A stretch of 64,000 bases of DNA from Orbicella franksi (Eukaryota). Under the pieces are notes generated by a model. The model was not told the DNA's origin, ran no database searches, and worked only from the letters and a program-made list of their open reading frames with translations. Position 1 is the first letter of the stretch; the number at the start of each line of letters is the position of its first letter. The stretch spans positions 3,906,001 through 3,970,000 of the forward strand of contig OZ116703.1 of assembly GCA_964199315.1 (NCBI GenBank), read 5' to 3'. A program made the translations under genes and the position numbers. This document shows, one piece after another, positions 1 to 49,100 of the stretch.

Positions 1-73
1 AGCTGGAAACGTTCAATATAACTTAAGAGTTTTTTGAAGGCTTACGTCTTTTGCGTCAGCCCTTCATTTTCAG

Positions 74-5045: not shown

Positions 5046-5102
5046 ATGGCGGAGGTCCCAGAATTAGGGAAGCGCTTGTTTGGAGGTTTTATTGCTTCTT
5101 GA
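5046..5102 (+). promoter_or_regulatory. Candidate 18-codon upstream ORF ahead of the SLC4 start codon
   Basis: TTAATGG start context and MAEVPELGKRLFGGFIAS*, ending 54 nt before the proposed SLC4 ATG at 5157. Whether it is transcribed is unknown. Confidence 0.3.
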
Positions 5103-5156
5103 ATTTAATGAACCAAACCGTCTTTCTGAGAGGTTCGTGTCATATTCTGTAGTGCT

Positions 5157-8100
5157 ATGGCGACAGAATATAGGCCCCGAATGGTAAGTTGTTTATCAGA
5201 TTTCCAACTGTGACTCGGCCAGGAATGTTGGTTTCACTGATTCTTCTTCGATTCCCACGTTGTGATCTTTGATCTGCCTGGATAGGAGCCTAACAGTTGT
5301 TTCCAAGCTTTCCTATCCCTCGCTTTTTACATTAGGTTGAAAGATATTACTTAAGAGATCTAATAAAAGCTTTCCGAAGGTTATATTGCTACGACGTTCT
5401 GTTGCCGGTTTCTGCAGTTAGTCAGATTTAGTTGATTGTGCTCTTCAGCTAACAGACGTGTATTCTGTTGTATGCCGTTTTCGTTTCAGGGCACAAAGAG
5501 TGAAGATGTGGCCGTCGACCCTCATACGATGGATTTTTATCAATCGCAAACTGAAGATATAGATATTCAAGGTAACCTACGTACACAACAGCAGCTTTTA
5601 GACTTTGAGAATCACTTTGAAGCGATGTCGTCTGCGAGTGGGAATATTGTTGACATCGCTCTGCCGGCTAATATAGGGACTTGTTCGAGTAGGTTGGTCA
5701 AAACCCCCTTTTGTAAGATTCCCATTGATCACTGCGGCAAATATAAGCTTACAACATTATTTTTGTTTTTCGGTAAGCCGATTTAAGAAATAAGCACGAC
5801 TACAAAGCGAGAAACTATCGATATTGATGTTGTAAAATTACAAACAACGAAAAGCGACCGCTAAAGAAATTCATTGTTGTGTAATCCCGTTCATTGCATG
5901 ACAAGGTACACGAATTTCTATCGCACAACCTCTCTCTGAACACTCTTAAATCTTGTGGCGACTGCCTTCTGAGCCAAGAGTCTTCAAGGTCGTTAAGCCT
6001 GATAGTGATTGAGAACTGAGACATGTCGAATCGTCGATCGGCACGGATATAATCTGGAGCATGTTGGATGAAGTTTGATTTCCCATCAGGTTCTTTAGAA
6101 AGATCTTAATGACCTCCCTGCCTTTCCCACAAACCTTGTTATTAAAACCGTCGAAGTAAACTCAAGTTTTGAGCCGGTTCCCGGGCATTGAGGAGCCGGG
6201 TTAATATTGGTCCTGTATTTTATAGCCGAGTGATAAACGAGATATTTCGCAGCTGTACTCCAGTATTGCACATAAAATTCGTGACGTCAAGTTTTCAACC
6301 AAGGGTCATCTATATAAACTGCCATGAGTTTTTATACCTTTCCTATATAAGCTTAAAACATCACAAGACATCCCGATACAGGAGAGATCCTTTGTTCTCT
6401 CTCATCAAATGGCACTGCACTAGCCATTTGAACTAATTACATTGTTTTGAACATTTATTTATGACTTGGTTGTCATATAATTGATATTTCATTTTAGTAT
6501 GGAATATTGTGGTTGCAAACAGCCGGTGTTTTCTGTTAAGTTCGTTTTAATCTTATGACATTCTTCAAAAGTATAATTCTATTATCTAACACTTCAAGCT
6601 AGGCAGGGCAATTTTTTTAAAAACAAAGTACAGCTCGAAAATTTAATAAAACTTCCAAATATTTTTCCTGTCTTAATAGTATGGTATATTCCAAATTAGC
6701 TACAAAAAAAAAATAGTCATCTGTACAAAGTACATTCGCATTATATTATATATGCTGCTAATTTCAAGGGATAATTTAAAGTTTGTTAAAGTTTTGAGAG
6801 TTTTGAATATTCAATAGCATATAGTTTATTTCATGGCGTGACATTCCACAGAAAACTTTCTTTAATACATTTGGGTCGGAGAGCAAATCTTTTCTTTCGT
6901 CACTCCTTATATCTTAGATTCCTAGAAAAACACAATGTTTTGTATGGTTGATTTAGAGAGGGTGTATATCGTATGTAAAACTTTGGAAATTGATGGGGTC
7001 GAAGGTAATGCGTTTGTTTCGTGCCACCTGCGAGTCACAGACGCGTATATAGCGACAACACTTGATGTTCACGTGCAACAGTTTCGTCAACAGTAGAATT
7101 TGGCTCAAATTTTCTGTCAGTTAAAAGAGGAAACGGCGTAGAACATCGATATACCTTCACTGAATGCACCAATGGGCTTTCGCTGCAAGATTTCCGCTTT
7201 CAAATGCCAAAATCTACAATTATTTGCAAGAGTAAATTGGATATAAACCCTTGATACAAATATCGAAGTGCTAGTGCCAGTCTACCTGAGCGCTGAATAA
7301 AAACACGACGCGCACGCAACCGAGGTCCACACAGAAAAGCGTGAGGGCGAAACATGGAGATCAGACAACCGGTGAATAGCAAAAAAAAAATTTGTGATCA
7401 AGCTGTTTGGGTGAAAAATTATAACTTTCGTTATTTCTTCTAGAGCTACGATGAAATCCCTGGGCCCCTGGATAAAGGAGTGTCTATCACAAAGGGTTAC
7501 TTTGGAGAACTCGACTATCAAAGTACGCATGAATACGAACAGTAGTGTTTTGCCCGGAACCGGCGCGCGCGACGTACAGCACACTTTATATCGACGAGGT
7601 TTTCTTTGTCATCACGTGTTGATTTTCAACAAAGTCATGCCCGTTTATTTTGCTTTCTTCTTCTAGATCATCGGCAGTTTTATGTAGGAGTTCATATTCC
7701 TCTGCGACCGAGAAAACACCATCACCATCAACGACATCACCATCACCGGCGAAGACATAGATCCCTCACACTCGATTCTACCGAGTCAGGTGAGAAATTG
7801 TGTTTACACTTGCTGGTTATTTCTGTAAAGGTTATGTATATAAGACATACATTATGTTTTTTTTTATCTCATGGGGGATTTTTCGTTTCCTTTGTGGTTG
7901 AAGGAGGAAGGTTTGGGAGAAATGAAAATTCTTTTAAGCGAAGTGTGTTTATATTATAGAGTAAATGTGAGTAGCAAGGCCGGGCGAATTTGCTTCTACC
8001 GCTGTAACGCGGAGCGTGGAACTTTTATTAAACTGTATGGATCGACATGACTAAACCTTTAAAGTGTTGTACGAATAAATTAGAATCTTTCCATTGTCAC

Positions 8101-11100
8101 AAGCTTTTTTATCTCGTGTTACTTGTCAATAATCCTCTTCAATACCGGTAACTTGTTCATCGAACATTACGAAACTGACTTGATTTCTTCAGGTTTCACA
8201 TTTCTTTATGTCACATGTTACAACTTATATTGCTGAGGGAAAGAAGCTGATTTCTGTGCTCCTTGGTTAAAACGCTTCAGTCTCATATTGTAGATTTTTT
8301 TGAAGCCCAAAATATCAATCGCATTGACTAGCAATGATTTCGTTATCATCTTGAAGTTTCATTAAGTGAAGCATGTGCGTAATATAAAGTCCCCATTACA
8401 TCGTTGTTGTTAACTTATATACGATTCACCTCAATCAAGTGCGTCTGACGTTTGAAGAACTTTTATCTACCATGTGGAAACTCAAATACTGAAAATTATT
8501 TTTGTATTGTGAAGTGGCCAATGTTCACAAGTATCAACCACGCACAAAATTGCTCTCGTATATGTACAGCAAAAACGTGCGATAATAAATTTTGTTTTGT
8601 GGGCACGTTAGTTTTTCTTTGAACAACTTCTTTCAAGAATTTCTTCACCTGAGGTTTTTAATAAAATTGCATATATTTTGTACATGCTGAATTTGCTTTC
8701 AAGGTAACCTGTCGTTTGGTAAACAGTACATGTACTTGTACAGCTCTGAATGAATTTTTGGAGCACGCAGTTTAAATATATGGTTGAGTTGCTCTACTCA
8801 AAGGGTAGTTGTTGTAATCGAGTTTTGTTTTTCCCGGTGTTCAACCTCACAGCAGGCCATTAGGCACAATCTATCATTGTTTGAGAATTCCTTCCTTGAA
8901 ACTGATTGTGCTTTTCCGTTCTATGACCAAGTAATTGTTGTTTCACTGTAGTTACATAATAACCAATCTAAAATGTACCTATCTTGTTGCTACAAATTGT
9001 AGCACGAAAAATTTTCTCCAGGGGCTATAGTTAATTGATTGGAATAATTAACGCGTTGTTTTCAATTAACAATTAACTCTGCCTGAAAGAAGGCATAATA
9101 ATGCAGTTTTGAGGCAATCTTACCTACCTTATATTTTCTGGGTTGTTCTTACAATGTGTTGGAAACTAGTTGAATGACTTCTACAACTAGATACTGGTAT
9201 TTTCTTAGTTTGTTTTTGTAGATCTCTACATGGGGTTTATTCTTAAATTTGTTTGTAATTTTCGTTAAAATGTACAAACCGACTGTGTTAATTTAAGCCA
9301 ACCATCCTGCTTGTAAATACCCTGTTTCCCTTTATTTGATTAAAAACCACTTTATAATTAATAATGATTGCTTCTGGTGTTCAGCTTTTAATTGTTAATA
9401 ACTGTTAATAAAAGGCAGTGATGATCAGTTCAAATACGTTTGTGATCTTCTCACTCCTTACACTCCGTCTCGTCAGCTACGTTCATCTTCTAAAGAACTT
9501 CTTTCCATTCCGCACTTCAATTTGAAAACATATGGCGCAAGATCTTTCTCTGTAGCAGCTCCTACACTCTGGAACACTCTTCCGTCTGACATCAAGAACA
9601 GCTCCTCAGTGTCCCTTTTTAAACATAAACTAAAAACGTTCCTTTTTAAGAAAGCATTTTTATAACTCTTTAGCGACATTTTTTTTTTATTTTTACTTTA
9701 TTAGTCTTAAGTGTTTTTAATATTTCTAACTGTAAAGCGCTTTTGAACTTTTAGGATATTGGCGCTATATAAATATTTTATTATTATTATTATTATTATA
9801 GACATGAATTCTGGATCACAATCCAGATCTTTGGAGGACTGAGGAAAAGACAGGACGTTTTTGATTTTAGCCTGCAATATAGGTGTATTTTGGGTGAACA
9901 TGGACCAAATATATCAGTGGTTATTTGATGGTCAGCATTGTGGTCTCTAGATTGAGGTGTCTGGGTCAAAATTCTGACCAGGGTCATTGTGTTTATGTTA
10001 TGCTTTCAAGAAAGACTCTTGACCTTCATACAGGGGTATACATTGGTGCTGCAGCAACTAAGAGGGATATGACCGGCAATGGAAAAGTTCATGTATCTGA
10101 TCCAAATTTTTATGGGAGAGGCAAAACTTAACTGCTTCATGCTAAATAACCCAGAGTCATGCGTGAACCTGTCTAACAACTAGGCTCCAAAAAGTCTTTC
10201 CTTTCCATTATTATTGTGGGACAGTGGAACCATGTATTGCGGTCACACCGTTATGCGGCCACTTTATTCTGGCCTGGACAAAAGCTTTGTCAGTCATTTT
10301 CTTGTTTAAAGAACTCCTTGAATATAACCAGACTTTTGTGGCCTGTTGACGACTAGATTAATGGGGTTCCACTGTACCAAATAATTCAATATGCTTGTTT
10401 TCCAGATACCGCAACATCCTCATTGCCGATAGACAAAGTACGCTTTATTCTTGGTGGTGAAGAAAATGAACAGGAACAACACAAGATGTTCACGGAGTTG
10501 GCAACATATCAATGCGACAAAGATGGAAATGAGGAGTGGAGGGAAATGGCACGGTGGCTGAAATTTGAAGAGGCTGTCGAAGAAGGTGGAGATCGCTGGA
10601 GTAAACCGCATGTCGGTACTCTGTCTCTCTATAGCCTGTTTGAGTTGAGAAGTGCCCTTCTACGTGGAACAGTTCTGTTGGACATGAACGCAAGCAATTT
10701 ACCTCAGATTGCAGGTTAGTATCTGATAGAATAACCTTTTACCCATTCTCATAATGGATTGAAGCAACTTGCGTGTTATTTTCCATTTGAGTTATTTGAA
10801 ACTTTTGATTTCAAAGAGTGATTAAAGGAGCTACATCACAGTTCCTGTGTCTTGAAAAGTATATCTTAAATTTTTCAAGTTCATCACTTGTAATCCATGT
10901 CAGTCTTCTACATCCTTGATCATCCTTGTTTCTTTATGGTTTATTAGTATCTTTGTAATGTTTCCCTATCTTAGTATACTATTATTTTCACACTGGAGGG
11001 TTTCCATCAATTTGAAGGTAATTCTGTACATAGCAAAAATAACTCAAAATGCCATGATTGAGTCTCTTTAGGGTCTAATGTATTTGTAATGACTCTTCTT

Positions 11101-14100
11101 CTTCTCTAAGATCTTGTCCTTGATGACATGGTGAATAAAAATTACGTGGAACAAGATAACAGACAGAGAGCTCGCGAAGTACTCTTGAAGAAGCATCGTC
11201 ACCAGGGGGTGAAATCCTCGAAAAAGAAAAGTTCTACCATGAGCAGCTTTGGATCATTTGCAAAGAAAGCCTCATCAGCAGGTCTTAGTGAAATGTTAAA
11301 ACGTTCAGACTCCTCGCAAAAGACAACAGCTCCTAAAACCTTGGAGGTAGTGGCAGAAGATCACAATGGTGGAGAATTCCCTCATTTGCCATCAGCTGCA
11401 GATTTAGTGGGAAAAGAGAAGGAGAGTGGACAGAATGGTGATGTGAAGCAATCAGAATCAGATACTGGCCTAGAAACGGTAACTCAAGCTGCAGTCTTAT
11501 CGTTCATTATCATACTTCATTGATTGTTGCTCAGCTTGTACTAATTAAAATTCAAAATGTTCAAAACAGAAGAGAACAGCTGGTGCAAAACGGCTTGTGG
11601 TTGCCTTGATGCTTTGATCAGGCTGTGATTAATATTAGCAAAATTTTGCCATTTGCTTTTCTTTGCTTATGACTGAGTGGTTAATTATTGTAGGCATGTA
11701 TACTCTCCACCCAATGAATTTCAGTAAGAAACATAAATCTACTAGTGAACTAAAATTTTAGCATTGAGAATGTGCACACAGAATGAAACCTAAAACAAGA
11801 ATTATCTTGAAAGATGTTCTGGTATATCATTAACCGTGAAATCCTGGTTTTATTAAAAACTGCCGACTGGGATAGTTTACCACCCTGTTTGTGCTATATC
11901 TAATGCCTTTTTCTGTCATCTACGATGGTTTCTATTTGTAGCATTTCTTGCAAATTTATCTCTTTACTTAAAACTTTTAACCACCATGCAAGCAATTGAA
12001 AACATTGAATATTTTGTGTTCTGAATGTTGCATGAAGTTCCTATTGAATGAAGTTTTTAAATTATGGTGATACTAAAAGTACAATAACTTCATTTTGCAT
12101 TTGATCTAAATGCAAGATTCTCATTTCAGTTTGATGCCAACTTCATGAAGAAGATTCCTCCTGGAGCAGAAGCATCCAATGTCCTTGTTGGAGAGTTAGA
12201 TTTCTTGAAGAAACCAGTGACTGCATTTGTGCGTCTGGAGAATGCTTCTCTTCTGGGTGACCTTACTGAAGTGCCAGTACCCACACGGTTTATCTTTTTC
12301 ATGTTAGGACCTCCTGGCACTCCAGGACGGTACTATGAAGTCGGACGTGCCATAGCAACACTGATGTCTGATGAGGTAAGTGTTTGTTAAATTCATGTTG
12401 GTAGATCATCCTGTTTACAGAACACAGGTCAACATTCAAGGCTTACATGTTAGGGTAATGCTTAGAAGAGTGATAAAAATAATGTATTTTGTTGCAAGCA
12501 TTGTACATTATTTTGCCATTTGGTATGACATGACCTACTGTCTAAAGGAGAAGTCCTCTTCTGAGAGGTATTCAGTTCAATTCTTTTGTTTTAATATTGC
12601 TTAAGTACGGTAACTGACATGTTGTTTATGTGATAGGTTTTTCATCAAGTTGCTTACAAGGCTCACTGCCGTGAAGACTTGTTGGCTGGAATCGATGAGT
12701 TCCTAATGCAGGTATGTTTTTTGCCCTTTGTAGTCTTAATCGATCTAACTCAACTTGTAAGAGCGTAGGACTTTGGACTGTTTGTTGGTTGTTTGTTTGT
12801 TTGTTTGTTTGTTTTTTCTTGTTTTGCATTTAGTTTGAAAATTTAATAATATTTGCAAAATGTGTCAAAGAATTTATTGAAGAGCAATAATATTGTTCTT
12901 ACACTTGCAAGGCAGCTTAGGCATTTAAAATTGGGAAATCTACTGAAGGTCTGAGCAAGTTCTGGAAAATTCTTCATGTAAAAGGGTTTGACTTTTATAC
13001 TCTTACAATTTTATTTAAATTGTTTTTCAGGTGACGGTGTTGCCGCCTGGTGAATGGGATCCCTCTATCCGTATTGAACCCCCTGATGTGATACCTGAAC
13101 AGGGTAAACGGCTTGAGTCAGCTAAATCTGCAGGTAATGGAGATGAAGAAGAGCATGACCCTGCGGGCGACAGAGAAGAACAGCTTCAGAAGACAGGAAG
13201 GTTAGAGGAAAAAAAAAAGTTAGATAGTAATATGAGTGCATAATGACGGAATGAAATGTTCTGACAGTTACAGTTTGCCAAGAAGCTCTTAGGTTCCTTG
13301 AACTCGCAGGCTTGTTGTACTTACATGACTTTGTATGATGGAAATGTTTACAGTGTTTTTTACATCAGTTGTGTTTTATTTGGCTAAAACTTTGTTTTAC
13401 GATGTCTTCCAATTAGTTAACTGCTGAAAAGAAATTCTCCCGTTGTGGAGAAAAGTGTTGAGGATGGCTCAAACAATAACTGTGACTAGTCATCTAGCTG
13501 TTATCCAAAGTAATTGTCATCATTCCTTCTTGTTACACCATGGGGTACATAAGCCTTGCCCAAAGTAATGGTGCAGTACAAATAATTATTAATAACTACC
13601 CGATAGGTTGTGTGGAGGTCTTCTTGCTGATATCAGGCGCCGAGCTCCTTGGTACTGGAGTGATTTTAAGGATGCCCTCAACCCTCAGTGCATTGCGTCA
13701 ATCATCTTTATCTACTTTGCTTGTCTCACACCAATCATTACATTTGGAGGGTTAATGGGAACAAAGACAGGGAAGAATATGGTAATTTGAGTTTTTTGAA
13801 CCTCAGTATGTTAATATAATCAACAATTATTCCTCAAGCATGTGTTGGATATAAAATTGTAGATGGCTTTATTCATCTCATGTCAAACAAGCGTGAGTGG
13901 AATAAAAATTATCTCCAAAATAAAGAAAGCTAGACTAAAATAAAAATAAAAATGCCCCCAAAAATCATGTGTACACCTACCATATTTGTGGCACATGGCA
14001 TAATGGCTTATAACCCATGATGGCTAAGCCAATGAAAGCTCTTGAATTGCATTATCCAATGATCCAGGGTTTAATAGTAATTATTGTCATAGTGGAGCCC

Positions 14101-27819: not shown

Positions 27820-30800
27820 TCTCTCGGAGAGAATATGCTTTCTCAGGGACTTCATGTCTTTCATCTTGAGTTTAAGAAGGTTTCTCAGTCGTTCGGATTC
27901 TTTTCTGCTTTGTTTGATGGCGTCAAGCAACTCTGATTCCTGCCTGGATCCAAAGCTTCCACTAAGCTCTCCGCGCTTCTGCAGCATGTTTTCCATCTGA
28001 GCGCATTTAAGGTCGGCATGCAAGCTGCCTAACTCGAGGTGATAACTCTCTTTCAGCATCCGCAGCTGCTCCATAAGGTCAGTAATCTGCCTGGTGCGCT
28101 CGTCAAGCTGGTCTTTCATGATCTCCAACACGTCACTTTTCTCACTGGTATGCATTCTAGTTGCCTGGAGACGGAGCTTAAGGTTGTCAATTTCCATGTC
28201 TTTGGACTCGAGCGCGAGCTTGGACGCAATTTCGTCAGCGTGACGCTGCTGTTCACTGGCTTCTTGGATGATCCGTACCTCTCGTTCCAGGGCCTCCACG
28301 CGTTCTTGTAAGAACTTGATCTCGTTCTCATAACGCGTGCGCAGTCGCTCAAGCTTCTCTTCCTTCGATTGGCTGGCGTTCTTTTGCTGTTCCATTTCGC
28401 TCAAGACAGACTTCACTTCTCGTTCCCAGCATTCTCTTTCGATTACATAACTCTGGAGTTTGCTATTGGTGGATGTAAGGTCGAGTTTCAACTCCGATTC
28501 CCGGTTGTGCTTCTGCGCCAGGTCTTTCTTCAGGAACTCGTTCTCTTTCTCTGTAACTTTGAACTTGGTGAGGCTCTCATTGTGCTCTCTTTCTTTGTCC
28601 TTTAACTCCTTTCCGAGCGACTCGGCCTCAGCTCTGAGCTTGCCAATCTCCAGCTGTTTGCGCGCAGAATCAGCGCATGCGCTACTCTGGACCTTGATCA
28701 TCTGTCGTTTAAGATTCTCGATCTCGTGGAAGGAGTTCGCAGCTTTGCCTTCAGCAGTGTTCAAGTTTTCTTCCGATTTATTCAGCATCTGTTGTATGTG
28801 ATCCTTCTGTTCAAGGACCCCCTTCAACTCACGATCGAGGATCTCCTTTTCGCTTTTTACTTCGTTCAGTTGACCACTAAAAGTACTACACAGCTCTTTT
28901 TCTTTCTGAAGCAATGCCTGAAATTGTGAGCACTCCTTCTTCGTGGCGTCTAATTGATGTTTTAGGATCTCGTTGGTTGCTTGAAGGCTTCCTCGCTGGA
29001 TCTCGAGTTCTTCGCATTTCTCACGGGAGTCGTCTAATTCCTTTTCTGTTTTCTCTAACCTTGTAGCTTTGTCTTTCACACTGTCCTTCAGCGCTGTAAT
29101 TTCGTGATCAAGGTTGGCTTTATCCACAGCTTTTTCCTTGCAGTCGTTTTCCAAGCTTGCTATGCGTTCGTCCGCTCCGGAGAGCTTTGTAAATAGCTCC
29201 GTCTTTTTCTCGTTAGCGGTGTCGTACAACTTTTCAAGCTCGTCGATCTTTAACTGGCTGGCGAACAGCTCTCTCTCTTTATCTTGAATGAGTTGCTGTG
29301 TTGCTCTTTCGTTTGCTTCCAGTTCAAACGTTCTTCTCTTTAACTGTAACATGTTTTCTTGGAGTGCGTCAGACTGTTGTTGACTTCCCTTGATATCGCT
29401 CTTTGCATCGACGATCTGCTTGCGCGAAGATTCCAAATCCTTGGCGTACCTTTCTTTTTCTTCCTCAGCGGTCTTCAGCTTGACCTTTGCTTCTTCCAAA
29501 GCTTCCTTCATATTCCACAGTTCTTTCTCGAGCAATATCTTTTCTCCCTTAGTTTCGGTAATTTCGTTATCCTTCTCTTTCTCCATCTCCACGCTTTTAA
29601 GTTTCAATGCTTCTAGGCGCCTTCTCAATCTCTTCACTTCGTCTTCTAATTTCCCCTTCTTCTTTTCTAAATCCTGGAGGTACCTTTTCACCTCCGATGC
29701 ATTGTTCCTCTCTTTTTGAAGACTTTCGTCCAGACGCGCCATTTCGTCTGATTTGGCATTCAACTCTTGTTGGAGAGTTCTATTATCGTTGAAAGATGAC
29801 AGACACGCCTTATGGAAAGAGTCCACTACGTCTTTCATTGATGTGTTTAAAGGTGTAACCGGTCGGGCGTCAACGCCATCAGTTCCCTCCTCATCATCTC
29901 TGGCCATAAACTCTGATGAAGGCAACTCAGCAAAGTGTTCACCGCTGTTTGTGGCTTTCATTTTGCGTACAACATTCATTTTGGCTTGCGCTTCAGCCAA
30001 CAAATCTTCAATCTCAGCGTTTCGCTCCTGGAGCTCTTTTTCCAACCAGTCTACCTTCTCAGTAGTGAGATCAAGTCGCTCTTTAAGGTCGTCGTTTTCG
30101 GCGCAGGTTTTTGTCAGTCCATCTTTGGTCTTGGCAAGCTCGTTTGTCAGGTTTGTGTTCTGCAATGACAAATCTTCCAAAGCTTGGTCTCGTTTGGTTA
30201 CATCGGCGCTGAAAACTCTCTCCTTCTCGCCCATAACTTCACTGGTCTGTTTAAGATCATCTTCGGTCTTCGTTAACGTTGCCTGAGTATGCTCTAAATC
30301 TCGCTCGAGGTTGCCGCGTTCTTCGATCACCTTTTGATGCAGTGTCTTCAACTTGTTCATCTGGTCGCTCCAGGCTGACACCTCTTTCTCGTTGGTTTCT
30401 CTCTCTGACTGTAGCGTCTCCTGAAGATGTTGGATTCGCTGGGCGCTAGTGGCGCACTGTTGTTTAAGTTCTTTGTTTTCCGCTCGTAAGTTGTCTATGG
30501 TCCCTTCAGCTTCCGTCAACTCGTTCTGACTGGTCCAATACTTCTCAAAGACTTCTTGTTTCTTCTCTTCCAGTGATCTCATCTTTAGCTCGTCGTTTTT
30601 CAATTCTTCTTGCAACTCTTCCACTTGTTTCTGCCTCCTCTCAAGAGCGCTTTTTGTTACAGAGAGTTCTTTCTTTGTTGTTAGCAGATCGGTCTTCAAA
30701 TTGGCTGCGGTTTCTTCGTTGCTGGCGATGATAACTTCCAGAGCTTCATTAAGCGATAGAACTTTACTGGAACTCGTTTCTTTTTCCTTCAGCAGCTCAT

Positions 30801-37439: not shown

Positions 37440-40400
37440 CTGCTAATGTAGAGTCTCTTTCCCGAAGCGTCGTACTTAAACTCGTCTCCAGGCTCTCAAT
37501 CTGGCTCGCCTTTACAACCTTTTCCTTGACAAGCTCTCGCAGCTCTTTCTCTTTATCTACCATCTGTTGCGCGTTCTTTTCCAGAGTTTCCTCGGTGTCC
37601 TGTACACTGCTCTCAAGAAATTGAATTTGCTGTCTGAGTAGATCTAATTCTTTTTCCTGGCTTTTCTTGACATTCCTTAAGTCCTGCACGGTGTCTTCTA
37701 AATAGGCTTTCTCTTGTTGAATATCCTTCAATGCGGTTTGAAGTATTTGCAACTGTTCTTTGAACTCCACAACTTCATTCCCCAAGTCCTCGATGATTTT
37801 GGGATCGTCAACTATTTCAGGACTGCTCTCGGGTAAATTTCCAGCTTCGACCTTTATTTCAGTTTTTCCATCAACTGTGTCAAAATCGACGTAATTCCCT
37901 TCGCTCTTGCTATGACTTTCTTGAATCTTTTTCTGGGGTTCCTCGTTCTCCCGTGCTATTTGCTCAATGCGTTGGTCTCTCTCAATAATTTCTTCCACCT
38001 TTTGCTCTAGGTTCTTATCTTTCACACTCAGTTTTGTCTCCAGCACTTTAATTTGTTCTTGAAGACGTCCCACTGCTGACTGTTCATCCATTAGTTGTGA
38101 AATGGTTCTGCTGTCTTCTTCAGCCTGATTTTCCAAGTCTTTCACCTTCTCGTCAGCGGCCATGAGCTGTTTTTTAAGATTGTCAATCGTAATTTGTAAT
38201 TTGGAGTTACTAGTTTCCAACCTTTCCTTTTCGAGTCGCGTTTCTGCCTCTTTTATTTTGTATTCTTGCATTGTCTCTTCTCTTTTGCTAATCTCACTTT
38301 GAAGTTCAATAGTTCGACTTTCACGTCTATGTTTTTCTTTATTTCTATCTTCGAGCGCTGCCTGCGTATCTAAAATCTGAGTCTCATAACTTTCGATGTT
38401 GTTGGTCGCAGTGAAGGTTTCTTCTTTATTCTTCTCGAAAGAATTTTTCAGATCAGATATTTCTGCTTCATACTTGATAATTTCCATCGTTGCAGCGAGA
38501 TTTTCTTTCTTCTCCTCTTCGAGCGAAGCTTGTAGATCTGAAATTTGCGTTTTATAACGTTCAATGTCACATTTTAGATTCTGGTTTTCTTCTTTAGCCG
38601 AATCTAGATACTTCTTCAGGTCCGAGATTTCTAATTCACACTCCTTGATTATGTTCGCAGCTGCGACATTTTCTTTCCTCTCTCCTTTAAGCGACTCTTG
38701 GTAATCTGTAATCTGGCTCTTATACCTTTCAATACCGATGGTGGCAGTACGATTTTCCTCTTTAGCCTTCTCCAAAGAATTCTTCAGATCCGAAAGCTCA
38801 GATTTATATCTTTCCATCGTTGTTTTGGTAGCACGATTTTCTTTTCTTTCCTCGTCGAGCGAAGCTTGCAAATCTGAAATTTCGAACTTGCACAACTCGT
38901 ATTCTTTAGATACGTTGGAACTTTCTTTTCCTGATCTGCTAAGTGAAACTCTTAACTCAGAAATTTCGTCTTGATATCTGTTAATTTCTTTCACGTTCCA
39001 ACTGTTCTCTTTCTTGGAATCTTCAAGTGACGCTGTCAACTCCTCCGTTTGATACTTGTACCTCTTAATGTCACTATATACACGCTCGTTTTCCTTCATT
39101 CTTTCATCAAGCGAAGATCTCAAATCTAAAATTTCAGACTTTTTCTTTCGAATTTCTTCTTCGGCATCGACCTTCTCCTTTCGTGTTTTGTCAAGCGAGG
39201 CTTCCAATTTCGAAATCTCTGATTTGTATTGTTCTCTTTCATCCATGGCTTTGCGGTTTTCTTGCTGTGTTTTTTGGAGGTGAGATTTCAGTTCGATAAT
39301 TTCGGACTTCTGCAGTTCAATCTCCTTTTTAGAGGAATTTAGCTCTTTCTTGGAGTTGTCCAGCGATGATTTCAATTCTGCAATCCTTGACTGACTATTT
39401 TCACTTGCTTTTTGTTTCTCTATTCTTGTTTCATCAAGTAATGTTTTCAGTTGCAAAGTTTCAGATTTGAAACTTTCAATTTCCTTCTTTGCTGTTTGAA
39501 ATCCCATCCTTGCTTCTTCAAGAGAATTTTCTAAGTGCTTAATCTGAGAATTGCACTGAATAATCTCCTTAGTTGACTTTTCGTTTTCTCTTTTTGCTTT
39601 TTCCAACGAGGATTTGAGCTCCGATGTTTGGGATTTGAACAGTTCACTGTTATTTTCAAGATGACCTTTTTCTGTTCTTGTCCGATCGAGGGACGCTGAC
39701 AATTCTGAAATTTGTGATTTGTGTCGCTGGACATCTTCTTCGGCTCTTAGTTTTTCTTTCCTTGTTTCCATCAACAAAGTATTCAAATCTGACACTTGAG
39801 TTTTGTACTGAAGAACTTCTCTACCAGCGCAATCCTTTTCTTCGCTTTTTTCGTCCAGGCAGTCCTTCATTTCGGAAAGTTTGGTTTTGTACAATTCAAT
39901 CTCTCTTTCAGCTTTCCGCAGTTCATCTTCCTTTCTGTATAGCTCTGTTTCCAATTCTCTACCATGCTCTTCTGAAGCTGCCAGATCTTTCTTCATGCGG
40001 TCAATCACCGACTCTAACATTGAAATATTTTGCTCGTTCTTGCTTGTTCGCTCCAAAGGTAGCTCATTTGGGACGCCGCGGCCGTCTTCAGTGTCAAAAA
40101 CAAATTCATGACTGAGGCAGTTCGTCTTACTTGCCCTCACAAGCTCTTCTAATGAACGACCTTGTTCAGTGGTCATGTTCTGATTTTCCTTGAAATAATT
40201 GTTGTTGATGACTTCATTCGGTATAGGTAACACGTGTTCGTCTTTCTGGTGTTTAAAATTCTCGAGAATTACTTGTATCTCTTGATCTTGTTTTTTCAAC
40301 TTTTCTTGAAGTTCCTTGTTTCTCTTATCTGCCTCTGCCTTTTCCTGTCTCGCTTCCTCAAGAGACTTCCATAACTCCGATAATCTCTTTGGTGGGTTGA

Positions 40401-42752
40401 AAGGCGCATTATCTTCACCGTCTAAGTAAGAAGCTTTCTTGTCGTCCCATAGTTTCTTGATTTCATTTTCAAGGCTCGCGATATCTCGACCTTGTTGTTC
40501 CATAATTGCCTTCAGCTCTCGATTCTCTTTAGTTAAATTTGCTATTAAAACCTCATCCTTCTTGGAATTTTCTGGTGTGGTGCCAAGTTCTGCTTCATCG
40601 ATGTCAACTTGAACCCCCTTTTCTGCTCTCTGTACTAACCGCACTTCGGTTTTGCTAACTTTACGCTCAACCTTGTTGGCAAAATTGACGGTTTGATCCA
40701 AGGACAATCTTCGTCTTACACTGCGAAGACTTTCAAATGATCGCATTCTTTCGAGCTTTCGGTGTCCACTTCCGCCCACTTGTACTCCTTTATCGACTCC
40801 CAGGGATCCCGTGCCCGGCACTCTGTTGGGTTGCGTGACACTACTGCGTCTTACGGCTAAGAGTTCCTCCTTTAAGTTTGCTGGTTGGATATTAGGAGTA
40901 AAGTTGAGTTCCACTCTGTGTGGTCGATCTTTAACTTTATCTGGTTGTGCTATTTCCTCCCGTTCCCTTGACGACAGTTCGTTCTTAGTAGTCTCTAATT
41001 CTTCCTTCAGATTCGCCGTTTCTTTCTGAGCTTCTTTTAACTGCTCTTCCGTCAATGAAATCCGTTTTTCCTTTTCTGTGAGTTCCTGTTCCATTTTCTC
41101 GTTTTCCAAACTTCTGCTTTCCAAGAGGCTCTCTAGGTTGGAGAGACTGGTGCGAGATTCGATCAGCTCATCTGAGAGCACGAGTTTCTCCTCCAGCATG
41201 GCCGCCATTTTTTGCTTCATTGACAGTATTTCACTCTCCATGGGTGAAATTGGGTTTGTGGAATCTTCACTCCTTCTTTCCATACTGTTAATGGCGCTCT
41301 CAAGGTCTAACTTCTCAACTTGCGATGTTCTTCGGGCTAAACTGATACTTTCAACTTTCGTATCTGCCGTGGAGAACTTCCTAATGGATCTAAGCTTTTC
41401 TTCGTCCTCCCTCTTTGAAACCTGAGCCAATCTTAATTCGTCTGATAAATCTTTGAGCTCGGCTTCGAGGGCTTTAAGCTGCGTTCCTACTTTGTCCTCC
41501 AATCGCTTCGACTCTTCGACATGTAAAGATTGTATCTTTTCCAAACCTTTAATCTGATGCTTCGCCTCTTGCATCAACTTGGACATTTGCGAGCTTTCCT
41601 CGTTCTCTCGTCCCAACCGAGATTTCAAGCCTTCTGTGAGTATTCTCTCCGTAGCTGTGGTGAGTTTTTCAACCGGGAGACTTCTTGTATCCTGGACTTT
41701 ACTTTGCCTGCTTTCAAACGCGTTCTCCACGTCTTTCCGTAGGCTTTCCTTCTCCTCTTCTGATAACAAATACGATGTCTTTCTCATCTTTCTCGGGGAA
41801 ATCAGTCCGTATTTCTTGAACTGTAAATCTTCTTCACTGTCTTCTTGCATTAGATCTTCGAGCGCTTGCTTTTGCATTTGAAACTTCTTCGACGTCACAC
41901 TATGCGTTAAAATCTCATTTTGTAATTGCTGAAGGAAATACCGAAGCCTTGTGCTCTTGTCCACGCTGGTTTGCAGAAGATGAGCGTACTTTCGAACGGC
42001 TTCCGATCGCTGCACCCGAAGTTCCCCGACTTTAGTTTCCTGAATCCGAAGCTTGTTTCGTAACTCGTGCATCTCGTTATGAAGTTTTTTGTTCGATTCG
42101 TTCATCATCTTCACTTGCCTTTCCAGAATCTTGTTCTCTGTCTGCAACGCAGTTGTTTTTGATCGTAGTTTTCTCATTTCATCGTTGATTTTATCATTCT
42201 CCTTTCGTCTATCTACCAGTTCTTGATCCAACAAATTTATCTCATGACGGAGATTTCCGATTGTTGTGTCTTTTGCTTCCGATAACCCTTTCTCGTTCAA
42301 AAGGCTTTCGTTTAGCTTCTTGATGGTCTCTCGAGCTTCCCTCAAGTCGTTAACAGTGTTAACTGGAGATGTTTTCTGGACTAAGGACATTTTGACTTGG
42401 ACAGCAAGTTCCGAATTAACTTTACAATGTAAAGAATCTTTCGGTTTGCTTTCAATTTCCTGCGAGTCTCTTTCGCTTCTCAATTTCCACCTTTTATTTC
42501 TCTTCTCTTGTTCTCCAGAATACCCCTCTGTGCTATCCCTTGTTTCTCGCTGTTCTTTACTTTCAAATCGTATTCTCAATTGCTTCCCGAGTTTTGAAAA
42601 ACTGGGAATCGTTTTTGTTGTCACTGAGTTCCCTCTTAAATCGAGATTCTCTCCCGCTTGGCTCCAAGGCAGAGATTCTTCAGAGCGAGACTCACGTATC
42701 GCCTGCCCGTGTGATAAGGATAGTTCGTGGACTGTACGATGCTGGGACATGT
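37440..42752 (-). CDS. Giant coiled-coil protein, first giant exon (5313 nt) with a 28-residue repeat array
   Basis: A stop-free ORF between the acceptor tttcacag (42753) and the donor gtaaga (37439). The ATG lies 2 nt into the exon, so it is either the start or an internal phase-1 exon. The 28-aa repeats lie at about 38333-39900. Confidence 0.9.
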
Positions 42753-45700
42753 CTGTGAAACATAAGACAAATTGAAGAAGTTAACAATAAACGTATATTA
42801 CGTTTTACCAAATATATGTAGTCTCTTTTGTAAGAAAGAGCAAAATTTCTTTACTTAAGTGTGTGCTTCTAGAAATACGTTACCACTGCTGGGTAATTTT
42901 GGCGTATTATGATTTCTAATATTTAATTCTACATTTCTGCTCAGTGAATCGTGCCGAAAAAAAAAATTGATGTGGAAAAATTAGCAAAAGAAGCCACTCA
43001 CAGTTGCCCCTTAAAAAACAAGTGACAGAGTAATCGACAACGATAGCTAAAAGGCGACAAACGATGCTTATTACATTTATAATCAGTTTTGGCGTTCACA
43101 GATTTTCGAGTGTAAGTAGTCAGTAGAGCATATGAAGGGATTGCGAGCAATACTCTATTTGAATCTGACGGAAAGTATAAAACGCTTGAAAAGTTACCCG
43201 TTCGCAAAAATTTAGCTTAGTATATTATCAATTCAGTGAAGCCTTTGGAGTAAATTAACCGCTGCTTTCATGCAGTATTGACGGTTGTCTACACTTTATA
43301 AGTATTTCAGCTACAGTCTCCCTCATTTTGCAACTGACTGTACTTATGTTTTGCACATTTGAAGGCCGTCGTTTTTTGAAAATTTTACCTTGCTTTTCGT
43401 TAGACATATGGCAAGTGTTTTCTCATATGGCCTCCGACGAAGGAGAATGTTTTCTTTACAAACTAAACTCCAAATAAATCGCGGTGTTATTTGGGCAGAC
43501 ACTGGCCTGTCTGATCAACCATGAACAAAACTGATGTGTTATTTAATATTGTGACTACCCTTGGGGAACCGATTGTCGGAGACCTCGCCCGCCAACCTAA
43601 AAATAGCGAGCTTAGGACGGATTATCGCTCCTAGACGACAGTTTCGAATTCAATAACCTAGAAGCGACATTTGAACAAAGCGCTGGATTTTTGAAAAAAA
43701 AAAAAAAAAAAAAAACACATGCAGATGGGCTAATTTAACTGTATATGAATTTAGGATATAAAAGTTAGAGTTTAATTTAACATCAACTCTCCTCACTTCT
43801 GCAACGTAACAGTTTCTTTTATAGAAACTATTTTTTTTATCATTATTAGCCTACGTGCCAATTTGGTTCCAGTTTACAAAATATTTAGAACTGACATCTA
43901 GGCTTTACGTTTCTGTTATAACGGCGATTTTATAGATATTATCAGAAAACCGGTCAAGCGACTAAACGGAAAATTAACGTTAAACTAAATGAACAGTTAA
44001 AACTATTGAATATTTTTTAGCTGTAGATTTAGCACATAAACGTTTTACAACGCACAAGTTTACACACACATGCAAAATCTTTAACCTGGTGCTGTTTTTA
44101 TGTAGGAGAAGGTATATCCTTCATGCAATTTTGTTTGGAAATTTTGTTTGAATTTTCACCAGCATTGCAATCGATTCAAATTTAATTGCTGGGTCGATAA
44201 AACATTTCTTGAAAAAAGAGCACAACATTCAAGGTTTGCAATCTTTATCAAACTTGATTCCCGACTTGTTCAGCGATAGCAAAACAATTCACGCTCGACA
44301 GGACTTGCTCTTTGTCTACCATGACGGAGTAACAGACAAAAGTGTTGCACTGAATTGCTCGGAACATTGCCACCGATTGGTGACTGTTATGTTAATTGTT
44401 GATTCTTATCACCGTGATAAAAAAAAAATTCAGTTTATATGCTCGGTTTATTTTTGTGTATTTCACAAATAAAGTCTTTCACTCTTGTGTCTTTCTGGGG
44501 GAACAGCATGAAGCTAGAACACACAGTGTTAGACCGAAGACCTATGGCATTGGAACATGTTTTACTTTACTAAATTCAAACAGCCCTCGTTACGCAATTC
44601 TTTAAGGGCATGACAGCACTCATAAAACTTTCTTACATGCAAAATCTCATGTCAAGAGCACTGATGAATATTCTGTGTAACTAACATTTTGCCCACACTT
44701 CAAGATAAATTAGCGTCTCAAAGAATTCAAACACAAGCGTCGCTTATAAATACATGACCCTCGTTTAAAATACCACAACGAATTATGCAATTTCAACTGT
44801 CGACCCTACTAGCTGGATTCTATGAAGATGAAGTGGAATTTGGTAATATATCTTAAGTAACTTTACTCGCTGTGTAATTTTCTCGTTTTACAATCAGACA
44901 CTAGGTCTCTTTAGAAGCCGAACGCAGATACTTCAACTCTCTTTGACAACAAACCGACCGCGTCCTTTTAACTATCACGTGTGTTATATCGTGTCTCAAT
45001 CCTTTAAAGTCAAGAACAAAGGAAGAAAAAGAATTTTTCCTTGACCGCGTGCGGTTTGGCAGAATTACGAATTCGCGATAAATTTTGAGTAACGAAGTGT
45101 CATGATTTACTTATATTGTTCAATTTGTCTGAAAATCGAAGGTGAGCCGACAGCAAACAATATCTGCAGTGACTCGTCAAAGCTATCATAAGTAATCTCT
45201 TCAAACAACAACAGAACTTGTTAGTCCAAGGTGATTGCGCAAAAGCAAGTCACACAGATTCGTATAAATTGTTGTCACTTAAAGTGCAACTTCAATAGCT
45301 CTACGCAGACATCTTATGCCTGGTTTTATATATTCCAATAAATATTACCAACACACCGTTATATTAAGAACAAAGAATTATAAAATGCTTTGTTTACCTA
45401 ATTTCAATCAGATAGTAGTGTTGTAGTTTAAAGCACTTGTTGTCTAGAATCTTCACTCACATTTGTAATCGCTCCACTCCGGAGAAAAGAAAACTTGACC
45501 CAGGAATCTTAAAGTTTGATCTTAGGTTTTTCAGCTCAAAAACATGCTGGGAAGCACGCTGTTAAAATTGTTTCATGCGCTACACACGGAAACAAACATA
45601 GCTGGTTGCATTTAATACAAAGTACTTTATACGAGCTAGCTAAACCAAATATTACTTACATTACATCCTTGGAGTGCTTCATCGTGAGTTCAGCGCAGTT

Positions 45701-46083
45701 GTTCCAAAGGTTCGTCGACGTTTTTTCTTCACTTAAGCTATGTTCGTCTTTAGATGACGCCGAACAAACCGGCGATAAATGGGCCACTTCGATTTGAAAG
45801 GTTACAGCTGAATTCCTTAAGCCCACTACGCATAAACTATGAGTGCATAATTGATGCTTGGTAAAATCAACTTCGTAATTGATTAACCGGGTTGACAGAA
45901 CTCTTAAGTTGACCATCTCAACTTCGTTTTCTTGCTCATGTCTGCTCCTATGAATCTGTGTCTTTTGCAATGTGGTCAAATTTTTGAGGCGCTGTACGCT
46001 AGAAAATTGTTTACGCTTCAATGTTTTTACACCAGTTATGGTAAAAAGCACTAATGATTATTTTGAAGCACATGGCTGGAACA

Positions 46084-46136
46084 TTTGGCGCGTTCCGCGT
46101 TCTCATGGCGGGAATTTGATAACATAATTGGCCAAT
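46084..46136. promoter_or_regulatory. Candidate E2F plus CCAAT promoter cluster
   Basis: TTTGGCGCG (46084), TGGCGGGAA (46106; reverse TTCCCGCCA) and GCCAATCA (46131) fall within 55 bp. A minus-strand gtaagt donor lies about 430 bp downstream, at about 45650. Confidence 0.4.
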
Positions 46137-49100
46137 CAAAGCCTTACAAACTGTTAGCAGTCGATCTTGTGCCTCTATAAAACACAAAGTTACAAAAAAA
46201 ATAAAGATGCTTTCTATGGAATCGAAAATCTTGTTGTGAAATAGCTATATTTCAAAACTGTTTGATAAAGAACAATAGGTAAAAATGTTATCATTCTTAA
46301 GGGTCAGAAGGCATGCTGAACGTGACAGAAAATTTCAAACGCATCTCGACCCTCTCTCGTCATTTCCTGTTTCAAACTGTTCGCTTGAGAGCTTGACCTA
46401 CGAAACAAATTGATTTTACTCACGAAAGCGTTCAGGTCAAACATTTCGCGCTTTTATTAGTTAGCAGTGGATAATAGGCGAGCTGTTAAACAATAAACTG
46501 AGACAAAACAACTCTGTTAATTACACTAAGAATTCCGTTTGCGTTCGCACCTAAGCGTCCTTAGCCAATGAAACCACGCACCAACAATTACCAATTGTTA
46601 CACATCAATGAACTCGACTGGTGGCAAATGAAATCTTATGCAAAAAAATAATAATTAGAATTTATATGCATATATCGTATATATATCGTGAACTGCAAAG
46701 CGAAACACATGGAGTAAAATTCACTCGCAAACAAGAGAAAATCCTCGTTGCACCAATTTTGCGTGGAAACTAAATTCACAAGGTTTTCCAAACTTCAAAA
46801 TGGCTATCAAATGGCGTTGTCATGACGACCAAAATTCAAACATTCGTCGCCACAGGCGAATGCAAATATGATGAAGAAATTTAATTGCAATTGAATTAGC
46901 TTGATTTCGTTCAATTGCTTTCGTTCGCTTGATTTGTTGTAAAATGTAGCTGTTATTTCTTTTTGTATCTGTATTTATGTGTATTGGTGTCAATTTGTTT
47001 GTAATGCCTTGGGTCTTTTCTTCCGCTCTTTTTTCCGCATCACGTCTAGCCTCGTTTAGCGTGCTTTACGGTTTGTGATTATTTTGTTCGTAAAGCCTGA
47101 CTGAGAAATAATAGTTCAATTAATAACAATCTAATGATAGTAATAATAATATCGTAATATCGTTGAGTTCAGTTTTTCTATTTTGACTGACTCCCCATTA
47201 ATTGCATTCTGCTTGTTTGTAAAACCTAATTGAGAAGTAATAACAGCAATCTAATAATATTAATAATATCATAATACTAGTTTGTTGTTGTTAGACCCTC
47301 GCTGAGTTGTCTCTAAGTCCTTGCCGTGAATATCAGCTCAGTATTTTTATTTTTTACTCATCCCCCCTTTATATCTGTATTTTGTCTGGCAGCGTTTAAA
47401 ACGTTGAGAATCGTTTACACTGAGATATGTATCTCCTTTCATTTCAGCAATTTTTTGCTTGTCATAGTTTATCCAAATACGTTGGCGGGCATGAATCAAA
47501 GTGAAAGAAAATTGAAGTTGTGAAGTTTAAATTAGGTGGACAAACTTGCCAAGTTGAAGCTTTAGTGAAAAGATTGTTTTACTTCAACAAGGAAAACGGA
47601 TAGGCCCGCATTCAGAGGATATTAGAGACCTCTGTAGGTAGGCTAAAAGCGGACACCGAAATGGCCAATATTTCAATTTACGGCCATTAAGAGTTCATTA
47701 AGAATTAATGGTTAGTAGATAACAGCTGCCGATGTCCACACACTCACATCTAGATCATATTTTTATCTGAGGGCCTACATCGGGTGTCCGAGTGTAAAAT
47801 GTTGCTACATTTTCACGTCTTATGTTTGTATTATGCCTCACCTCCCGGTCCATTCTTGATATTTTGACTTATATTACCATTTTGCTGTTTTTGTACTTCA
47901 GCAAACTAGTGATTCGAGATTATATTCCCTTAGATACGTAGGCCATTTTGTTTAATTATCAGACATATTTTTTTGAGGCGTGTTACGAAGTCAGTTCATG
48001 TAAAGAACGTACTGTGCTGTAACGCTCGATTTTCTCAAATGACTACATAAAATGCCTGACGAAAAATATCTGTCACTTATGTTGGGTACAAATAGCTGAT
48101 TATCGAGAAGTTTTTTTTTTTTGCTTTATTTTCTTAATCAAACAGACATGCATTTTTAAGGCAGGAGACAGTTCGTCTCTTGCTATGGTCAGGTGATATG
48201 TTTTTAAATAGAAAAACGAAAACACTCTTAAAAAGCTGTCCAATTTTTGTTCTTTTTGTTGAATTTATTCAACGCTTAATGGCATCGTTTCAAATTTCAA
48301 ATGTCATAATTTTTGCCCTAATTTCGATACAAGTAAAAGGATACGAAAACAGGATCTTCTGTGATGGAAGATTTTAGCACCCACGCGATAAAATCTCCGG
48401 CCAATGCATTAGAAAAATTATTTCGTTGAAAAGTTTGCGGTGGTAAACAAGTTTTGTTTCCTGTTATGCTAAAGGACACGGTCCGAATATTGCATCTGTG
48501 TTCTCGACTTTTAAACATTTTATCAGCGTCAACCAAACATGCATAATACTAGTAATTGATCCTCAAATTGTTTGCATTCGATTCGTCGGTTCTTGACAAC
48601 TATCGACCGTTTTACTGGTCATTAAGCGGCTTATTTGAATTTCCAATAGCCTCTTCGAGGACTTGTTCTCAGACTAGGAGACTGCAAAAACGCGAAAATA
48701 TGTCCATATGCAATTAAGGTTAATACCTCTTGGATTACAATGCTTTCTTCAAAACACCGTGAATTTAGATCAAACTTTATCATTTCTCTGCGACGACTAA
48801 GTTTCACTTAAACACTTATCAGTCAACGTTGGTTTTATTTAAATACTCAATTTATGTATTTGTACAAGCTTCCTCATGATTTATGGCGATTATTATCATG
48901 GTCGATGTTGGACTGAAGTTGTGTCACAGAAAGAGATATTCTTGTATAGAACGAACATTATCTTGGCGAAAAAATACAGTGTCACTTTGATTTATACCAA
49001 CTACATTAATTTCTAGGCCAGGCAAGCTTGATCAAGCTTGCACATTGTGATACCACTTTGTCGACTGGCGTTTATTCACTGAAATCCAGCTAATCTTCTA

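Follow-up and report, generated by a model that had tools for sequence, protein, structure and literature searches.

The minus strand of a 64,000-nt stretch of the Orbicella franksi genome (assembly GCA_964199315.1, contig OZ116703.1, 3,906,001-3,970,000; hereafter the window, to which all positions refer) carries a three-exon gene whose coding sequence lies almost wholly in two giant exons. This gene is real and transcribed, and it encodes a coiled-coil protein of 4,069 residues. Judged from its sequence, the product is an uncharacterised protein of a familiar class, the long coiled-coil proteins, and its family matches no named one.

Gene structure and transcription

The minus strand has two giant open frames, one of 1792 aa (37372-42750) and one of 2325 aa (27781-34758), and the exon borders within them are canonical. 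An AG acceptor stands just before 42752, with the ATG two bases on at 42750, a donor (G|GTAAGA) follows 37440, and a polypyrimidine-AG acceptor (TTTTCAG|) directly precedes 34679. Joining 42750-37440 to 34679-27820 gives 12,171 nt, or 4,057 codons free of stops, and the split codon G|CG at 37440/34679 shows that the join is in phase 1. Past 27820 the frame runs on for 12 further codons to the stop, which brings the complete product to 4,069 residues.

Four RNA runs were aligned over 32400-38300. They show a joint between 34679 and 37440 that leaves out 2,760 nt, whose ends read GT..AG in the sense of the gene (CT..AC on the plus strand). This joint was crossed by five raw polyA reads with five start sites in run X23, and by one contig each in runs X10 and X1, the latter contig being 11,791 nt long. 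Read depth in X23 was few-fold over both giant exons and zero in the unique parts of intron 2. The entire structure is also present in a 12,422-nt metatranscriptome contig of the Joint Genome Institute (L009), which aligns to the window in three blocks corresponding to the three exons (Table 1). It encodes P0054, a member of the protein's 90% cluster with 4,069 residues and 99.36% identity to the conceptual translation, in which the first residues, the junction peptide and the last residues all match.

An earlier note on this DNA, made from the letters alone, had proposed two exons joined in phase 1 and a product of at least 4,050 residues. The junction and the length of the first of these exons stand, as attested by the RNA joint, L009 and the split codon; five polyA reads and the X10, X1 and L009 contigs show the two exons spliced together, and the product can now be put at exactly 4,069 residues. 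The exon end that the note had placed at 27820 falls away. The donor there (GTAAGT at 27819) was rejected because L009 is colinear with the genome from 34679 to 27639 and the orthologues share the short tail that follows the conserved ILSER. Since L009 reads through this GTAAGT, the coding sequence ends at 27783-27781 with no further coding exon. At the other end, an in-frame TAA just upstream of the ATG in the transcript means that the coding sequence is complete at 4,069 residues. L009 contains no coding exon upstream of 42752, its upstream exon being non-coding only, and tblastn queries with the N-terminal parts of the proteins from Nematostella, Montipora and Acropora found no further coding exons in the window.

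Table 1. Parts of the giant coiled-coil gene and of its product, with window positions.
Feature	Positions	Strand	Basis
Exon 1, non-coding 5′ untranslated region (UTR), at least 67 nt	45660..45726	-	L009 bases 2-68 at 100%; GTAAGT donor at 45659
Intron 1, 2,907 nt, GT..AG	42753..45659	-	Gap between L009 blocks; sequence reading
Exon 2, coding, 5,313 nt; residues 1-1770 and base 1 of codon 1771	37440..42752	-	L009 bases 69-5381, 99.8%
N-proximal coiled-coil block, residues 200-300	41851..42153	-	52% identity to Nematostella; sliding identity, blastp
28-residue (4-heptad) tandem repeats, about 22, residues 897-1513	38212..40062	-	Protein autocorrelation
Intron 2, 2,760 nt, GT..AG, phase 1	34680..37439	-	Joint in RNA; sequence reading
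Terminal exon, at least 7,041 nt; residues 1771-4069, stop 27783-27781	27639..34679	-	L009 bases 5382-12422, colinear, 99.4%
Middle block, residues 1880-2140, helix-linker-helix	33574..34353	-	Alignment A2, 73% mean column identity
Disordered conserved linker, about residues 1996-2048	33847..34005	-	Invariant A2 columns; same motifs in P0017 and P0018
Second conserved non-coil linker, about residues 3345-3400	29791..29958	-	Alignment of five full-length orthologues
C-terminal block, last 309 residues, three helices and short tail	27784..28710	-	Alignment A1; AlphaFold 2 model

Several smaller observations concern the transcript. The leader exon (45660-45726) contains two short upstream ATGs ahead of the main start, in addition to the in-frame TAA; one opens an out-of-frame upstream reading frame that overlaps the main start, the other a minimal ATG-TAA, and these may regulate translation. 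An AATAAA lies 3′ of the stop at about 27557-27552; L009 stops at 27639, and the record offsets of Logan contigs imply a transcript 3′ end near 27471. A 3′ UTR segment some 50 nt long (27639-27690) recurs with 86% identity at 27495-27545, just downstream of AATAAA. The first coding exon varies in length between alleles or populations: the X10 transcript contig has an in-frame 18-nt deletion at 37802 that X1 and X23 lack.

Two short stretches of intron 2, at about 36143-36339 and 36931-37127, are dispersed repeats over which RNA-contig depth reaches 983 and 302 in X10, and 2,276 and 1,377 in X1. Many of the reads there run off into unrelated sequence. These segments look like copies of abundant repeats of the short interspersed nuclear element (SINE) or miniature inverted-repeat transposable element (MITE) kind that are transcribed elsewhere, and not like exons of the giant gene.

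Protein architecture and conserved blocks

The product is rich in Glu, Lys and Leu, with a mass of about 472 kDa and an acidic isoelectric point of 5.3. In a simple test of heptad periodicity, 70% of its residues (2,846) pass, against 17% in a shuffled copy, and its 38 prolines cluster in roughly ten short linkers. With a rise of 0.1485 nm per residue, the heptad residues would span about 420 nm and the whole chain about 600 nm. A membrane segment is ruled out because the highest 19-residue Kyte-Doolittle mean is only 0.70, with no segment reaching 1.6. A short-motif scan of the protein found no SxIP or TQT sites; it returned several basic clusters resembling nuclear localisation signals (NLS), as well as KEN and D-box-like strings, which were judged uninformative given the composition.

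Identity along the protein, measured in a sliding frame, is uneven, with three well-conserved stretches and a poorly conserved repeat region. The middle and C-terminal blocks were each aligned across nine sequences, Nematostella included (A2 and A1, respectively). The C-terminal block has 75% mean column identity in A1 and 65% identity to Nematostella, and residues 3801-4000 (the last 200 scored) reach 70%. Within the middle block, the linker contains two invariant Ser-Pro sites and the motif SPDSALGIS, then GLLCKMPTMIENFRAVV; it is a candidate phospho-regulated docking site. The second conserved linker reads NSGE.FAEL, followed by an acidic patch and SFH.ACL.SFNDNR.

AlphaFold 2 (AF2) models the middle block as two confident helices (2-116 and 170-258) separated by a linker with a predicted local distance difference test (pLDDT) score below 50, and the C-terminal block as three helices with a mean pLDDT of 84.9. 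As a homodimer, the C-terminal block scored 0.43, compared with 0.00 for the best of three controls, in a test whose pass mark for eukaryotes is reached by 17 of 29 solved one-chain pairs and by none of 30 solved single chains, and in which a pass may stem from solved coiled coils that the predictor has memorised. The homodimer runs agreed in at least 90% of contacts, with a partner pLDDT of at least 79. Between residues 11 and 245, contacts join each residue to its counterpart in the other chain (i to i) in a 3-4 spacing, and since this is the signature of a parallel, in-register arrangement, the modelled pairing is most likely a two-stranded coiled coil of that kind. By structure, and not by homology, the protein has the features of the class of two-stranded parallel coiled-coil rods, the in-register pairing part of this assignment being predicted by the model.

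The tandem array in the first coding exon gives autocorrelation peaks, with 29-33% identity, at lags of 28, 56, 84 and 112 residues, and its repeats align in register. Tandem Repeats Finder detected no repeats in the DNA; the 28-residue period is visible in the protein only. The array is present in the O. franksi and Desmophyllum proteins and was undetected in the Acropora, Montipora and Nematostella orthologues; its presence or absence between lineages accounts for much of the length range of the family (3,454-4,069 aa).

Relatives and comparison with named families

Word-indexed searches, for which exon 2, the C-terminal portion of the Nematostella orthologue and the full 4,069-aa protein served as queries, returned coral proteins and one Nematostella protein only, the search with the C-terminal block covering proteins of 2,134-6,792 aa. 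The middle block was searched exhaustively with a HMMER profile against 1.84 billion cluster representatives, and all eight matches were family members or fragments in which its motifs recur. Two of them (P0017 and P0018) lie on metagenome-assembled contigs of eukaryotic origin and have diverged further than the Nematostella protein. The orthologues are 48-70% identical to the O. franksi protein in the best local alignment, which covers 59-72% of the protein, and they share all three conserved blocks and the C-terminal ending; the Nematostella orthologue has an extra disordered N-terminal stretch of about 270 residues. The O. franksi protein carries both the middle block (SPDSALGIS ... GLLCKMPTMIENFRAVV) and the C-terminal block by which the hexacoral family is recognised. 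On the evidence of these searches, detectable members of the family appear to be limited to hexacorals, with Nematostella and both the complex and the robust stony corals, and to a few eukaryotic metagenome contigs.

A distant relative on a 2.3-Mb metagenome contig (L001, 1800-20600) bears on the history of the gene. The phase-1 intron near residue 1771 appears to be shared with the coral gene, whereas several introns interrupt the sequence equivalent to the giant last exon, so the giant-exon state is not universal in the family. This suggests either intron loss toward stony corals or intron gain in the L001 lineage. Within the O. franksi genome, searches with either exon (E <= 1e-5) and with the middle- or C-terminal-block profile (E <= 0.001) matched the giant-gene locus only, and the gene is therefore single copy, with no paralogue detected in the same genome; in these searches the best-scoring candidates were scored, and the result is compatible with distant kinship.

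The automatic names of the orthologues vary widely. The Nematostella protein (XP_032232001) is called centrosomal protein of 290 kDa (CEP290), the Montipora (XP_068761620) and Acropora muricata proteins golgin subfamily A member 4-like, and two Acropora proteins (XP_029209655 and XP_015762278; A. millepora and A. digitifera are the species so named) centromere-associated protein E-like. The A. palmata protein (XP_074637996) is listed as uncharacterised, that of A. cervicornis as uncharacterised or hypothetical, and that of Desmophyllum (KAJ7373748) as hypothetical. No paper was found under any of six orthologue accessions, and a general literature search returned nothing specific to it.

None of these names is borne out by domain content. 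Scanned against Pfam, the two exons and three orthologues showed nothing above cut-off, only coil noise. The CEP290 domain (PF16574) is absent from both exons and was found at C2:23.25 Mb (100 bits); the Rootletin domain (PF15035) is absent from the protein and lies at C3:34.66 Mb (86 bits). The same holds for the CENP-F N-terminal domain (PF10481; found on contigs C8 and C11), the GRIP domain (PF01465; C7:27.3 Mb and C6:931 kb, the latter about 3 Mb from the giant gene) and the PACT domain (PF10495; C5:25.19 Mb). The CENP-F leucine zipper (PF10473) had no match in the protein, and a close orthologue scored 22 bits against a cut-off of 34.5; the intermediate-filament rod domain (PF00038) reached 17.9 bits against a cut-off of 40. 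No Pfam match to a kinesin motor, as in CENP-E and other kinesins, was found in either exon, and the hydropathy profile excludes a giantin-type C-terminal transmembrane anchor. Because the diagnostic domains lie at other loci of the genome, one-to-one orthology to CEP290, rootletin/CEP250, CENP-F, GRIP golgins or pericentrin is unsupported.

Structural comparison was equally unspecific. Foldseek, run with each of the two AF2 models on the models of Swiss-Prot proteins, gave generic helical matches only (TM score <= 0.36), PDB profile searches with A1 and A2 found none below E = 0.003, with matches to unrelated helices, and language-model look-alikes of the C-terminal and middle blocks were mixed, unrelated coiled-coil families with low shared-feature counts. 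The earlier note's description of a heptad coil broken by short linkers, lacking motor, GRIP, PACT, intermediate-filament and membrane signatures, agrees with the periodicity test, the grouping of prolines, the Pfam scan and the hydropathy profile. Its suggestion that the protein is unassigned and lineage-restricted also holds within the reach of the search tools, where named relatives occur in stony corals and Nematostella only. Its further idea of a cytoskeletal scaffold, with a ciliary rootlet, centrosome linker, Golgi tether or cnidocyte fibre as the possible structure, is an inference.

Neighbouring sequence

On the plus strand, a gene of the SLC4-type bicarbonate transporter family occupies 15007-21400 (HCO3_cotransp, E = 9.5e-65 for one exon). 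An open reading frame at 20965-21396, His/Lys-rich and then with an acidic tail, may be its last exon. Between this neighbour and the giant gene, a 318-codon minus-strand frame at 25173-26129 encodes a partial reverse-transcriptase domain and represents a fragment of a long interspersed nuclear element. Farther along, an uninterrupted plus-strand frame of 1,397 codons (55500-59693) encodes reverse transcriptase, RNase H, an integrase zinc finger and an integrase core, and is the pol of a Ty3/gypsy-type long terminal repeat retrotransposon.

Discussion

We propose, with a probability of roughly 0.6, that the gene encodes a segmented, hinged alpha-helical rod of about 472 kDa that forms a homodimer some 0.4-0.6 micrometres long and serves as a soluble cytoplasmic tether or scaffold, the O. 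franksi member of a hexacoral family. The analysis shows the gene structure, its transcription, the heptad periodicity, where the protein is conserved and that it belongs to none of the named families; we infer the tether role and the cell location, and take dimerisation from the structure model. Two copies would pair into a parallel, in-register two-stranded coiled-coil rod, in which the conserved C-terminal 300 residues and the N-proximal coil could act as attachment ends. The two conserved disordered linkers, one of them with two invariant Ser-Pro sites, would provide docking or regulatory sites, while the fast-evolving 28-residue array would set the length of the rod as a spacer expanded in robust corals.

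This architecture resembles that of the golgins (GOLGA4 and giantin), rootletin/CEP250, CEP290, pericentrin/AKAP450 and CENP-F, with which the coral protein shares a very large size, a near-continuous heptad coil with short hinges, a predicted parallel homodimer, and conservation concentrated at the ends and in short linkers. Unlike those tethers, it has no GRIP, PACT, Rootletin, CEP290 or CENP-F domain, no motor and no C-terminal membrane anchor. Some vertebrate genes for long coiled-coil tethers also have very large exons.

Several points weigh against the hexacoral tether as we have framed it. Distant kin of the C-terminal block were sought by word index only, within the size range given above, and a shorter non-cnidarian relative may exist. 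The coiled-coil composition weakens every homology search, and orthology to a bilaterian protein may consequently be invisible. A polyA run carrying the same species label (X21) has no exonic reads, which may mean that expression depends on sample or tissue. Finally, no RFX X-box-like site was found in 44500-47500, compared with 12 weak matches in the whole window, and a ciliary role gains no support because no such site lies near the transcription start.

Given the difficulty of homology search, an alternative is that the protein is the hexacoral orthologue of a known long coiled-coil protein of bilaterians, for instance a golgin or one associated with the centrosome or cilium, and has diverged so far that the similarity has dropped below detection. 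We consider this unlikely. The names assigned by annotation pipelines (CEP290, golgin A4-like and CENP-E-like) would favour it if they did not contradict one another, and the coil matches that could be cited for it (CENP-F_leu_zip at 22 bits, CCDC113_CCDC96_CC at 21.6 bits and a precomputed CCDC39 match labelled 'weak') are, like all Pfam matches, well under their cut-offs. The exhaustive profile search leaves it some room, having been run with the middle block only, but that search found nothing outside the family. The genome moreover has separate loci for the CEP290, rootletin, CENP-F_N, GRIP and PACT domains, and the PDB profile and Swiss-Prot fold searches returned generic helices only.

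Very unlikely, in our view, is a nuclear or chromosomal protein, for instance of the kinetochore corona, spindle matrix or nuclear scaffold, in place of a cytoplasmic tether. The basic NLS-like clusters, the KEN and D-box-like strings and the conserved Ser-Pro sites of the linker are common in mitotic proteins, and some relatives are automatically named CENP-E-like. However, such motifs are expected by chance in a Lys/Glu-rich protein of 4,069 residues, with most KEN strings falling inside the repeat unit, and the protein has neither a kinesin motor nor a CENP-F domain. Its full-length transcripts also come from many adult-colony metatranscriptomes, which is atypical for a gene restricted to proliferation. 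An over-extended gene model, in which two separate genes or a non-functional open frame had been run together, is suggested by the unusual exon sizes only and can be regarded as refuted: one transcript contig (L009, encoding P0054) spans the three exons with a single frame of 4,069 codons, the spliced joint occurs in raw polyA reads, and identity to the Nematostella, Acropora and Montipora proteins is 48-64% over the length.

More speculatively, the family might have arisen anew in anthozoans as a dimeric ruler or tether, half a micrometre long, for a cnidarian-specific structure, with its length tuned by repeats and its engagement set by a Ser-Pro switch. This version is distinctly unlikely at present. 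The structures concerned could be, for example, the anchoring fibres of cnidocytes or ciliary cones, or the attachment apparatus of skeleton-anchoring cells. Gain and loss of the 28-residue repeats would then tune length between coral lineages, and phosphorylation of the invariant Ser-Pro linker would switch engagement.

For the broader reading of a hexacoral tether or scaffold, the significance lies in what long coiled-coil proteins do, namely set distances and hold organelles and cytoskeletal structures together. Coiled-coil composition accounts for the database names CEP290, golgin A4-like and CENP-E-like, which are artefacts and are best kept out of functional studies of corals or Nematostella. 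Tagging, knock-out and interaction work in Nematostella can start from the corrected gene model, together with the three conserved blocks and the invariant disordered linker. A conserved, single-copy, half-micrometre rod that is confined to corals and sea anemones would suggest that these animals build some cell structure in a different way.

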